A stretch of 64,000 nucleotides of DNA from Thecamonas trahens ATCC 50062 (taxonomy: Eukaryota > Protista > Apusomonadida). Of this stretch, positions 51,960 through 57,277 are shown one piece after another. The notes below the pieces were generated by a model, which was not told the origin of the DNA, did not search any database, and saw only the letters and a list, made by a program, of their open reading frames with translations. A program made the translations under genes and the position numbers. The stretch spans positions 372,001 to 436,000 of the forward strand of contig NW_013657661.1 of assembly GCF_000142905.1 (NCBI RefSeq), given 5' to 3'. How positions within the stretch are numbered: the stretch's first letter is position 1; every line of letters starts with the position of its first letter.

Positions 51960-54898
51960 ATGGAGGCTAGGGTCTTCGGGTTCCTCCCGGACGAGGTGTA
52001 CAAGGCACTCTCTGCCCAACCGTGGCGAGAACGGACACAGGCTGCCCATGCCCTGCTTGACGGCTTGCAAGGACTTGGGCCAAGGGAGATACCTTCGGTA
52101 CGGAGACACCTTGCCAAGCTCTGTGATGTGGCTACCAAACTGCTGGCTGATCCAAAGTTCAAGGTCGCTCTCACAGGCTTGCACATCATCGAGTGCTTGG
52201 TCCTCCGCTTTGGTCCGGCTCTCAAGCCGCTGCTCTCGGTCCTTGTTCCCCGTCTTGCTCACGAACTCGGTGGCAAGCATGTGGTATTTGTCTCGGCTGT
52301 CGTCAAGGTCTTTCACGATCTGTATGATGTCCTTGGTCCGCTCCCGGTCGTCGTCCATCTCGCAGAGCATCTCGAGACCTCGCCACCGCATCGCGTCGTC
52401 GAGCGATCGCTCAACCTCCTCATCTCTGCTCTGCTGCTCTTTCCCGACGCCCGCGTTCCCTATGCCTCGCTCCTCCGCCCATTGCTGCGCCTCCTCACAG
52501 AAAACGGTCTGGAGCTCGGCGAACAGCCGCGGACTCGCGCAGGCGTCATGGTTCTCGAGTTTCTGGCTATCGCATACACCGACGTTGGCGAGTCGCTCAT
52601 CGACGAGCTCGCCCGCTTTGCCCCGTCGGACGCCGCGCTCGACGACTTGCGTGTCCTCATGGTCGCCACCCCGCTGCCCACCATCACAGAAGACGGTGTG
52701 GTCGAGCACGGCGCACAGCTCCCCCCCCGCCGTCGTCGGCTGCCTCGCACTCGAGCGAGGTCTCGGCCTCCCGCACCCCACACCGCCGCCGCTCCTCCCG
52801 CCGTGCTCTGCTTGCACCGGACACCTTGTACCGCGACCATAGCGGCCGTGACGACCGCGGCGCACGCGACGGCCCGGCCTACACCCCGCCATCAAGCCAC
52901 CGCCGTGCCAACACCTACGACGCGTCGCGATCTGCCCCGTCGTCGCTCCGTACGGATGCCAATGGCCGCAGCACGCGTTCGCCGTCGTCGCCCTACGTTT
53001 CGCCAGCCGACCACTCTTCATACGCTGCCCGCCACGCCTCGTACCGCGCCGCACGCGACGCCAGTTCCGGCCCCAGCTCGGTCCTCTCCCGCCGCAACGC
53101 CCCGCCGTCGGTCCAGCCGCTCAGAGTGGACCGCTCGCAAGCATCAGACCACCCGCATGCCGGCGGTGCATCCTCCTCGTCATCTCGTGGCGTCTTTCGC
53201 GCATCCTCTATTCACGGCCGCGACATCATGCTTGACGACGCCGATCAGTCCCGTCGCCGCGTCGCCCCGCGCACCTTTGGCGGCCACATCAAGCGTACCC
53301 GGAGCTCGCGCGATGCCATCGTCGACCCGTACGACCTCGACGAAGCGGAGCCTACCCGCAGCAGCGGAGGCGGCGGCGGCAAGCACAAGCGCCGCATGTC
53401 CACCCCACGGCTCGGCCTCATCAAGCGCCGTGCCTCCCAGCGCATGGCCGCTCGCCGCGAGTCGGTCGACTCTTCGGCCCAGTCCGCGATCGCCTTTGCG
53501 CCCAAGTCCGAGCCACGGCTCGAGCCCGAGCCCGAGCCCACTGCAGTGCGCACCCCATCTCATCGCCGCGGCTCCTCGCGTCGCCGTACCTTGTCGCTCG
53601 TCCCGGATACCTCCCTCGCCGTCTCGATCCGCTCGTCGTCGACCCGCTCCCCAACCGACTCGGGCCACTCGCCATCACCGATGCCTTCACATGCAGGCTC
53701 GTTCTCGCCAACCGCCGACCGCCGCCGCGCGGCCTCCATTGCTGTAGCTCCACTTGCGGAGCAAGCCTCCGACTCTCAAATCCCACTCCGCCGCCGTCGC
53801 AAGAACTCGGTCAGCTCGGCCTCTTCGCGCCTCGACTCGTCAGTGCCCAACATACCGCTGGGCGATTCAATGTCATCGACAGCCAGCGGTCGCCGCCGCC
53901 GCCGCAAGCCGTCGCACAGCCCAGATCCTGACCACGAGCCGGCCCGCACCTCCAGCTATCGCCGCCGCCGCAAGCGCTCGGTCGACCTCAACCGCAGTGT
54001 CTCGCCACAGTTGATGCCGTCGTCGATGTCCTCGCGGATGTCCGACGTCGACTCCAATGCAGCCGAGGCTGAAGCCGGGTACAGTTCAAGGCGGCCGTCC
54101 CGGCGGATGTCTACCGCCTCGACCAAGTCCATTGTCTCGATGAGGTCGTATGCCGGCGCCGCTGCATCACCCAAAATCGACAATGCCGAACAAGTTCCAA
54201 CCGAGCTGCTACAGCCGGTCGATGGTGACGTCGACGCCGCTCTCGAGCACGCGCTCCACGATGCGTCTACAGCCAAGGAGTGGGAGGTTGCGTTCCGCGC
54301 CCTTGAGCTCCTTCGCCGCATTGTTGTCCACTCGCCCGACACCGTCGTGGCCGCCTCGGACGGCGTCCCGCGCCTGGTCGAGGCCACCCGGACCTGCGTC
54401 GCCAACCTCCGCTCCTCAGTCTCACGCGCAGCGCTGTTGCTGCTCGAGAACGTGTTTACCCACCTCGGCCGCCCCATCTCCTCACATCTTACCGGCCTGG
54501 TTCCGGACCTTGTTAAGAAGGCTGGCGAATCGTCGACCTTTATGCAGGAGCAGGTCTACTCGACCCTCGAGGCCATGGTCACCCACGTCGCACTCTCGCG
54601 TGCCATCGGCACCCTCTGCGGCGAGGCCGAGTCCAAGAACAAGCTCATCCGTGCCGCCGTCGCCCATGCTTTTACCCAGCTCGTTGTCCACCGCGGCAGC
54701 CGGGCCCTCCACGCCCGCGACGTCGGCGACCTCCTCGACATTGTCGCCAAACAGCTCAAGGACCGCGACTCCAAGGTCCGCGCCCATGCCCGAGCCACTG
54801 CTAAGGCCTGCTATGAAGCCACTCCGGACTTTAGCTCGATCCTCGCATCGCACCTATCGTCGTCGGCAGCATCTGCCTTTGCCGCCGCAAACAAGTAA
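51960..54898 (+). CDS. TOGARAM1: Crescerin/TOGARAM (FAM179/CHE-12) family ciliary tubulin-binding protein with two TOG domains and a Ser/Arg-rich linker; one frame break
   Basis: VFGFLPDEVYKAL...WRERTQA...LLADPKFKV (TOG2-like) and EWEVAFRALELLRR...NLRSSVSRAA...KKAGESSTFM (TOG3-like). The ORFs join across the C8 run at 52721-52728. Confidence 0.85.
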
Positions 54899-54915: not shown

Positions 54916-57277
54916 TCACAGCGCCGCCAGCAGCGAGTCGAGCTCGTCCATGGCGGGCGCATCACCCACACCGTTGCTACTCGTTTGGCCACCCGCAGGC
55001 TCCAGCGCTGCCAGCATCGAATCCAAGTCGTCGTCGCCGTGCCCGCCTTCCACACCACTGCCACCCGAGACCCCATCCTCTGGCCCTAGCGCTGCCAGCA
55101 TTGCGTCCAGATCATCGACTGCCGCAGCCGTCTCGCTCGCCAAAGCCGCAACCTGCGGGGTTCCGACGGCGCTGCACCTGTCTCCAATGCTGCCATGGCC
55201 GCATTGAGCACATCAGACTCTTTGCGGGCCGCGCGCTGCGCTTCGGCTTCAGCCTCGGCCTCAGCCTCGGTCTCACCTTCAGTGCCGGCACCCAGCGTGT
55301 CAAGCAGCGCGTCGAGGTCCGAGAACTCTTGTGCTGCCAGATTGCTTTCTCCGTTCTCAGCATTGGCCAGGTCGATCTGCTCCAACAAGTCATGCAAGCT
55401 GGTGTCGGCCGGGTTGGTGCTTGCACTTGCGCTGGCACTTGCACTTGCGCTTGCCCCCGCGTTAGCACCACCATCGCCATCGGGATCGGCATCCGGCTCG
55501 AGTTGACCCAGAAGTTCGGCCAGCTCATCCGTCTCGGCAGACGGCACAGGCTCAGCCAGAGACCCGGCTACGGGCTGAGCCACATGCTCGGGTTCGACCA
55601 CAGGCTCTGGCTCCGAGGCGGAAGCAGCGGCAGGACAAGGTTCGGCACTCGGCGCTGATGCGGCCTTTTTGGCAGCGGCAGCGGCGGCCTCCTCACCCTT
55701 GAGTGTACGCAGAGTCTCAGCGACAGCCAACGCAAGATACTCGGACTCTTTGCGGACCTTGTTCTTGCGCTCGGGCTCAGGCGTGGTCTCGTCGGTCACC
55801 TCGACGGCGGCAAACTGGAGCTGCGACGGCCGCGACTGGACGGTGGCAATGTCACGCTCGAGCTGGTCACGCACGGCGGCGTCGGGCGTGTTCTTGCGGA
55901 CAATCGACGCCCGCGCCACAAACGCCTGCGTTTGTTTGGAGACCTCGGACGACGAGAGGAGCACCTCGGAGGCGGTGGTAGCGTCGGCCAGCGACCGCAT
56001 CGACGAAGCCAGGTTCTTGGCCATCGAGACCAACGCCGACGTCTCGTCCTCGCCGTCATCGTCAAAGGCATCGATCTCGTCAAGCACACTTTGGTGCGCC
56101 TCGGCATGGACCTCGGTCACCTGCACAGGTGTCGCCTGGACCTTGGTCACCACCGCCTGCGACTTTTGCACCATGAGCTTGAGGTACTCGCGCTCGGCAA
56201 ACTCGACCGAGTCGGGCAGCCGCTTATGTGGCTGTGGCGGGCGCGATGCGGCCTTGGAGAGCGCGTTGACCAGCTGCGCCAGCTGGCCCAGGGCCTCGTG
56301 GAATGCCGTTGGATCAGCGCCCGGCTGCCTCACCAGCACCACCGCCTCGTTGGCCAGTCGGGTCAGCCCGCCGTTGACGTAGCTCACGCCGCGCTCCAGA
56401 TCATCGCGCATGTCAAAGTCTGCCACCTCGGTGATGCGCGCCTCGACGAGGTTGCACAGCGAGGTAGCCAGTGCCTTCATGTGCTGCAGCACCTGAAGCG
56501 AGCCCTGCCTGTTGCCACGCGGCAACACATCGCGCAGCTGCTTGAACGAGAGCATCAGTTCGCGCGCAACCTTTGCAATGCGCGAGACAGCAGCCTTGTC
56601 GAGCGCCTTGAGGAAGTCCGAGACGGCGACTCCAATGGCTCTGCACCCATTGATGATACCAGCCCACGCCTTGCCCACCTTGTAGCTGCTGAGATTACGG
56701 GTGACCGCGAGCAGCGTTTCCCCAGCTGTATGCATCGACTGCGAGACTTGGTTCAGATCGCTCACCACCTCGGGGTACTCGGCATACACTTCGGTCTGGG
56801 AGATGGCTACAGAGCACAGCGTCTGCACTGCGGCGCCCACCTTTTCGCATCCGAGCGCTGTTTGGGCGATGTTGATGGAGGAGGAGGGAGGGGGGGGGGG
56901 TGGGAAGGACGGCTCGTGTGAGAGAATGCGCACACCCATACACACCTTAATTCCCATACACATACATAGACATGTATACTACTACCCTATGGCATTTGTG
57001 TGGTATGGCTAGATATGCACTGCCTTGTACGGCTTGCAGAAGACCGACACAGGTGGCGGCGGAACGGTTGGCGAATTCTGACGAAGTGACACCTGGAGCG
57101 AGAGGGGGGGGGGGAGGGGGGGTATGGGTATGACGCATGGTATGAGACAAGAATACACAGGGGGGGGGTGGACATACTGATGGCTGGAGGTGGGGCTACG
57201 TTGTGGTTCTGGAACTTGATGGCAGTCACCACAAGTTGGGAGATAGAGTCCGCAACAGGGTTGAGCGACGCCTGCAT
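54916..57277 (-). CDS. Vinculin/alpha-catenin family protein (~680 aa): D1 head + tail (Vt) + LD-motif C-terminal extension; exons 57277-57178 and 56857-54916, one frame break
   Basis: ASLNPVADSISQLVV and IINGCRAIGVAVSDFLKALDKAAVSRI resemble vinculin D1. LVSMAKNLASSMRSL...DAAVRDQLERDIATVQSRPSQLQ...LALAVAETLR resembles Vt. Phase-1 GTATGT...ACAG intron; one base missing at 55157-55160. Confidence 0.85.

Follow-up and report, generated by a model that had tools for sequence, protein, structure and literature searches.

Analysis of a 64-kb window of the genome of Thecamonas trahens (contig C19:372001-436000; GC-rich eukaryotic DNA, the positions below being those of the window unless a contig is named) revealed on the minus strand, between positions 57277 and 54916, a gene for a protein of ~680 aa, in which a head resembling the vinculin D1 domain is followed by a short linker, a helical bundle resembling the vinculin tail in fold and an acidic C-terminal extension with an array of paxillin-type LD motifs. 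It is a real T. trahens gene, absent from public protein sets and apparently unannotated. Most of the coding sequence belongs to one open reading frame (ORF; 55086-56963, 625 aa in the ORF list), which is preceded by a short first exon and continued by a second-frame ORF (54916-55143, 75 aa) with a stop codon directly after the last motif, all on the minus strand. Exons and frames were scored separately in all searches and fold predictions, never as one joined protein.

Exon 1 (57178-57277) starts with the ATG at 57277, comprises 33 further codons and one nucleotide, and encodes the first helix of the vinculin-family head. It ends at a donor GTATGT at 57177, and the intron region read from the sequence (56858-57177, GT..AG, 320 nt) closes with an acceptor at 56859-56858 that brings back the main frame in phase 1. 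Within this region lies a possible cassette exon of 72 nt (57092-57021), which would keep the frame whether included or skipped. We favour a single 320-nt intron, because the exon spacing in that model (31 residues, to which the cassette would add 24) fits that of the organism's own vinculin (35 residues) and the cassette exhibits no similarity to vinculin (shuffle p 0.59).

The rest of the head (56244-56857) is predicted to be all-helical and to form two four-helix bundles. The profile analysis identified a match of this main-exon part to the Pfam Vinculin family (PF01044, profile positions 43-215, E-value 1e-6, 27.9 bits), and BLASTP aligned it collinearly with residues 81-204 of AMSG_10327, the canonical vinculin of the organism (25% identity, E-value 3e-5). 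Exon 1 is collinear with residues 15-44 of the same protein, including the LxPVADxxSQLxV helix (score 56, reached by none of 2000 shuffles), and the N-terminal D1/VH1 domain as a whole is collinear with that of a bona fide vinculin family member. Searches of the short exons against Pfam reported no match, and phmmer searches of the PDB sequences with the whole ORF and with the head reported nothing meaningful. We take the head to be a true but divergent D1, in line with the D1-like head of the initial annotation of this DNA.

The linker (56106-56243) has a Pro-rich start (RPPQPHKRLP) in the translation and one helix in the model secondary structure. Only ~50 residues thus separate head and bundle, with no room for D2-D4 or an M domain, which bears out another point of that annotation. 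The bundle (55656-56105; ORF residues 287-436; predicted local distance difference test score, pLDDT, 60-85) consists of one short and four long helices. Its top Foldseek matches (6duw, 6dv1, 5l0j, 1qkr and 9qwo; E-value 2e-3 to 1e-2, template modelling score 0.57-0.67) are the actin-binding domains (ABDs) of alpha-N- and alpha-E-catenin and the vinculin tail, 9qwo being the complex of the tail with LD2. In the full VIA-align scan it matched the vinculin tail 1qkr with a Z score of 15.3 (root-mean-square deviation 3.2, 145 aligned residues), a value to be read with the caution that helical bundles obtain high Z scores non-specifically. On the sequence level, the best of 177,635 PDB sequences reported by phmmer was the metavinculin tail, a weak match (E-value 0.82); a profile hidden Markov model built from three tails (those of the organism's own vinculin, of its paralogue and of a relative from ENA) gave a weak 8.0 bits, reached by 13 of 5000 shuffles; and hhalign gave a weak E-value of 0.078 between bundle and tail, reached by 6 of 300 shuffles. 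One alignment register is common to these three methods. Fold and weak sequence signal taken together, the bundle is likely to be homologous to the vinculin tail.

The extension that follows (~240 aa, predicted disordered) is acidic and Ala-rich as initially annotated (A 22.5%, D+E 21.7%, net charge ~-49), and all seven motifs quoted there were found in the translation at their places, on flexible spacers of 27-42 aa. Its main-frame part (55161-55655) carries motifs 1 to 4, namely DELAELLGQL (55529-55500), SLHDLLEQI (55400-55374), SDLDALLDTL (55322-55293) and DVLNAAMAAL (55214-55185), of which the third is the sole strong one in this frame (17.1 bits) and the other three are degenerate (4.5 bits or less). 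The part in the second frame (54916-55156, stop at 54918-54916) carries three strong motifs: DDLDAMLAAL (55116-55087), DDLDSMLAAL (55032-55003) and MDELDSLLAAL (54951-54919), the last of which ends the protein. With a position-specific scoring matrix built from T. trahens paxillin LD motifs only, motifs 5 and 6 score 23.2 and 15.8 bits and motif 3 the 17.1 bits given above, compared with a maximum of 14.0 bits over ~70,000 positions in all other ORFs of the window; the terminal motif is too short for this 12-mer scan. Four motifs match L[DE]x[LM][LM]xx[LI], against 0.01 expected, and none of 20000 shuffles reached four. The array of strict LD motifs of the paxillin family (LDxLLxxL) is thus real, and it matches the motifs of the organism's own paxillins. 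In addition, the last two motifs with their linker align with the C-terminus of another T. trahens protein with LIM domains and LD motifs, encoded on contig C4 (40% over 43 aa, E-value 2e-4), which hints at a shared, portable C-terminal LD module.

T. trahens is regarded as having a full integrin adhesome (bioRxiv 10.1101/2020.04.29.069435). The canonical vinculin (contig C56, L005:3058-8115, plus strand) is 100% identical to AMSG_10327 of T. trahens ATCC 50062 and has 1697 aa, ~600 residues more than animal vinculins. Two other loci of the genome exceed the Pfam cut-off for the vinculin family; the locus described here is the fourth, with a sub-threshold match. A second long vinculin-family gene lies ~130 kb away on the same contig (C19:295522-298473, minus strand; 1510-codon frame, tail 52 bits); this paralogue has an Ala-rich stretch before the tail, and no D1 match was reported for it. 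LD motifs accompany LIM domains in three paxillins (C13, C46 and C30) and in the inverted LIM-LD protein of C4. The C13 paxillin (~505.0-506.7 kb, minus strand) exhibits at least seven near-identical LDDLDSLMADL motifs with Pro/Ala linkers and a period of ~105 nt, an array that looks recently amplified, followed by a Cys/His-rich region that by reading, not by Pfam, corresponds to four LIM domains. In the inverted paxillin (C4:129771-132125, plus strand) two LIM domains precede a Gly/Ala/acidic tail, whose six LD motifs extend to the very C-terminus; the ORF of this protein holds a masked run of N. Talin-type I_LWEQ domains were found at at least seven loci, several of them in open frames of 2200-3200 codons. 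The FAK FAT (PF03623) and GIT1_C (PF12205) domains were not detected genome-wide, which leaves vinculin-family tails, parvin and talin-type bundles as the candidate LD receptors. According to one proposal, LD signalling had paxillin and vinculin as its ancient core (bioRxiv 10.1101/278903). The affinity of the human vinculin tail for paxillin LD1 and LD2 is 2-3 uM, LD2 being placed on helices 2-3 (PMC12013189).

We propose, with a probability of roughly 50%, that the protein is a truncated vinculin-family adaptor of ~680 aa, in which a D1-type head, a linker and a tail/ABD-type bundle are joined to an LD array that acts as a multivalent hub. The D1-like head would dock on amphipathic helices exposed in talin-like rods, many of which are encoded in this genome, and the LD array would provide a multivalent platform for the recruitment of LD-binding helical bundles and domains, the candidates being parvin, the talin rod bundles and the tails of both the giant vinculin and the paralogue. 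Through it, a vinculin-binding site would become a hub of the paxillin kind, but one that lacks LIM domains. The protein would most likely be an accessory plaque adaptor. Because T. trahens keeps the giant vinculin, the paralogue, the three paxillins with LD motifs and LIM domains, and the LIM-LD protein, it is one more adaptor in a lineage in which several scaffolds bear LD arrays, and not a replacement of the adhesome wiring, which tempers the alternative wiring envisaged in the initial annotation.

Several observations weigh against the truncated adaptor. The Pfam Vinculin match expected from the initial annotation was found for the head, with a score below the curated gathering cut-off of 38.1 bits, and it vanishes in a scan of the whole ORF; the head was also modelled, from the single sequence, with low confidence only (pLDDT 33-44). 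The bundle resembles the vinculin tail in fold but has no significant sequence match, and the four-helix bundles of p130Cas, Pyk2 FAT, CCM3 and GIT1 reach VIA-align Z scores of 14-15 over 115-136 residues. The bundle is also acidic (isoelectric point 4.7, net charge -9) and without the basic C-terminal end of vinculin tails, in contrast to the organism's own vinculin tail (isoelectric point 9.1, net charge +5). This charge disfavours a canonical actin- and lipid-binding tail, so that canonical binding of either kind by the bundle appears doubtful, and it makes a landing site for acidic LD helices less obvious. Finally, the contigs from RNA libraries described below reach neither the frame switch nor the introns, and no orthologue that would allow conservation to be judged was found in protein libraries or in two metagenome scans.

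In another reading, self-interaction is the main mode of action, in which the LD helices would bind to the protein's own bundle, in autoinhibition, or to that of a neighbour, in chains or condensates opened by the engagement of the head with a rod. The best structural matches of the bundle are all LD-binding (vinculin tail, p130Cas-LD1, Pyk2 FAT-LD, CCM3 and GIT1-paxillin), and 9qwo, with LD2 bound to the vinculin tail, is among the Foldseek matches. In the sequence of this protein a small net positive charge falls on helices 2-3, where LD2 sits in the human vinculin tail (PMC12013189), and the array has seven motifs on flexible spacers. Nonetheless, the negative net charges of bundle and extension should repel each other, and the structural scores suffer from the non-specificity mentioned above. 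We consider such a mode unlikely. The same grade is given to the broader picture, in which a talin-binding head, an LD-receiving bundle and the LD array would allow self-clamping or head-to-tail plaques without paxillin, and in which an apusomonad-wide shuffling of LD modules onto scaffolds would have produced an alternative pre-metazoan adhesome wiring.

Alternatively, the helical part could be derived from vinculin, with the LD-like motifs serving as export signals or generic acidic amphipathic motifs unrelated to adhesion plaques. An origin of LD motifs in nuclear export signals, with which they can overlap, has been proposed (bioRxiv 10.1101/278903); here, three motifs out of seven are degenerate, and the bare LDxL[LIM]xxL pattern is not enriched genome-wide (180 matches vs 254 in the control). 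The LD signal, however, comes from the full signature and from clustering, not from bare LDxLLxxL. The DNA-level pattern D-[DE]-[LF]-D-x-[LIM]-[LF]-x-x-[LF] occurs at 16 places in the 28.7-Mb genome (one in the control), three of them in this gene and four in LIM-domain proteins, and the full DDLDxxLxxL signature is nearly confined to LIM-domain paxillin relatives in this genome. The strong motifs, as read from the sequence, are without a fourth hydrophobic position such as classical export signals have, and their carrier is a vinculin-family protein. A role unrelated to adhesion plaques is in our view rather improbable.

The frame switch inside the extension raises the question of whether the gene is intact. 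The change from the main to the tail frame demands one extra base or an intron of 3n+2 nt and must fall between 55210 and 55089, the likeliest point being a run of four C (55157-55160), where a fifth C reads ...SEPPQVAAL... into the tail frame. If the frameshift were real, the protein would end at 55086 and the last three motifs would be relics, or the whole locus could be a pseudogene, which would account for its lack of annotation. The frame break is indeed present in the assembly as given, both protein libraries searched are without this protein, though the T. trahens proteome is represented there, and no orthologue was found. On the other hand, the tail frame has no ATG before motif 5 and is translatable solely as a continuation of the main ORF, yet it stays open for ~100 codons and closes right after the last motif. 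Motifs 5 to 7 follow each other at intervals of exactly 84 nt, and their codons differ pairwise among the three copies by 12 synonymous vs 6 non-synonymous changes, the linkers having diverged. The spacing, the mostly synonymous change in the motifs and the position of the stop show that this frame codes for protein, which ends with three diverged copies of a 28-aa unit. Elsewhere the gene is a clean ORF of 625 codons, and contigs identical to the gene occur in RNA libraries. Decay of the gene is thus quite improbable, and the frame break is most simply explained as an undercall of one base in the C run of the assembly. Such undercalls of C runs are a common assembly error.

Other ways across the frame break were considered. 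A programmed frameshift was rejected by inspection, because the C run is not slippery for the required -1 shift, and frame-fixing introns that would start upstream of 55181 are at odds with the contigs from RNA libraries, which are continuous there. Of the GT..AG candidates that keep all motifs, one is left (59 nt, 55177-55119); it is GC-rich, unlike the pyrimidine-rich intron 1. Shorter introns, non-GT donors, and further-downstream acceptors that would delete a motif are possible. GC3 periodicity, analysed for the position of the switch, was uninformative in the Ala/Asp/Glu-rich part. On the other side of the stop codon lies a convergent gene (52826-54898, plus strand), whose own stop is 17 nt from that of the gene described here; the 3' untranslated regions of the two must therefore overlap.

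The contigs from RNA libraries cover positions 55181-55914 without a gap, as well as several stretches between 56004 and 56826. Identical contigs of 150-294 nt come from one organism-labelled run and three metatranscriptomes, with no mismatch to the genome in the majority of the longer contigs. They hint at expression of the locus, with an origin from DNA in the libraries being possible too. Two odd joints in the RNA contigs, the first at 55274/55671 and the second within a poly-C tract, have the appearance of repeat artefacts and were discarded. Inside the acidic extension, hexamer repeats GAGGCx/GCAAGx (55243-55275 and 55420-55454) draw many 90-95% identical contigs of unrelated metatranscriptome organisms and give rise to misleading depth peaks. 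In subsurface and seawater metatranscriptomes, contigs of 150-243 nt are identical to the gene between positions 55181 and 56826, which suggests that those samples contain T. trahens or a strain nearly identical to it.

Searches for relatives remained fruitless. A word-indexed search of a protein library with the helical part reported nothing at an E-value of 0.01 or better, not even the protein itself, and an exhaustive phmmer search of 1.84 billion representatives gave two matches, both TPR or low-complexity artefacts. A metagenome scan with peptide patterns found no relative, and a second one, with a degenerate DNA pattern for DDLDxMLAAL, returned 108 contigs, which we consider chance matches because none of them contains a head homologue, a tail homologue or a second motif. 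The ENA assembly ERZ17175005 contains on contig NODE_805042 a vinculin with 77% identity to T. trahens vinculin in the tail region, which indicates that a related apusomonad has been sampled; no counterpart of the gene described here surfaced from that assembly. Language-model neighbours of the protein, found with low recognition, are mostly talin rod clusters, one cluster carrying Pfam Vinculin. That the protein is no vinculin family member at all, but a generic talin-rod-like helical-bundle protein with a convergent or compositional likeness to D1, would agree with most of these neighbours, with the sub-threshold Pfam match that is lost in the whole-ORF scan and with the lack of a PDB match for the head, but is very improbable in view of three independent collinear D1 matches in the right N-to-C order that start at residue 1, the one neighbour cluster with Pfam Vinculin, and a bundle that best matches vinculin and alpha-catenin tails.

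Compared with vinculin (human VCL and AMSG_10327), the protein has a D1-type head that begins with the same first helix and is followed by a Pro-rich stretch, and a C-terminal bundle that resembles the tail in fold; it differs in the lack of D2-D4, in its acidic instead of basic bundle and in a Pfam score below the cut-off, and it runs on for ~240 residues with LD motifs where vinculin ends at the tail. To alpha-catenin it is linked by the ABD as top Foldseek match, with a short N-terminal helix followed by four long ones; it has neither an M domain nor any evidence of a beta-catenin partner, and catenins are without an LD array. Another shortened member of the Pfam vinculin family is alpha-catulin. 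With the paxillins (those of C13, C46 and C30, and human PXN) it shares the signature DDLD[AS][LM][LM]A[AD]L and flexible spacers of ~30 residues. In paxillins, however, the motifs are N-terminal to three or four LIM domains, whereas here the array is C-terminal, and no LIM domain was matched by Pfam in any piece of the gene, so the protein is not a paxillin. The vinculin-paxillin hybrid of the initial annotation accordingly holds as far as the LD motifs are concerned; the paxillin part consists of motifs only. Like the protein described here, the C4 LIM-LD protein ends in a Gly/Ala/acidic tail whose C-terminal array comprises six or seven LD motifs, but its folded module is a LIM pair instead of a vinculin head and tail. 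An LD array is thus nothing peculiar to this gene; what sets the gene apart is the fusion of the array to a vinculin-family protein. The literature searched yielded no account of any vinculin-family protein that carries LD motifs, and the databases searched no such protein, which agrees with the initial statement that the architecture was not known from described proteins.

The analysis flags a gene that is lacking from current protein sets. Its architecture can be likened to a vinculin head and tail joined to the N-terminus of paxillin, and with a head, a tail and LD motifs it would offer a compact natural construct for in vitro tests of head-tail and LD-tail interactions. In a vinculin-family protein with its own LD motifs, both proposed ancient partners of LD signalling (bioRxiv 10.1101/278903) would stand on one chain. 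Thecamonas is among the few non-animal lineages with a full integrin adhesome, and variants found in it may show which connections are ancestral and which were free to vary; together with the LIM-LD protein of C4, the present gene suggests that LD arrays are a movable module.

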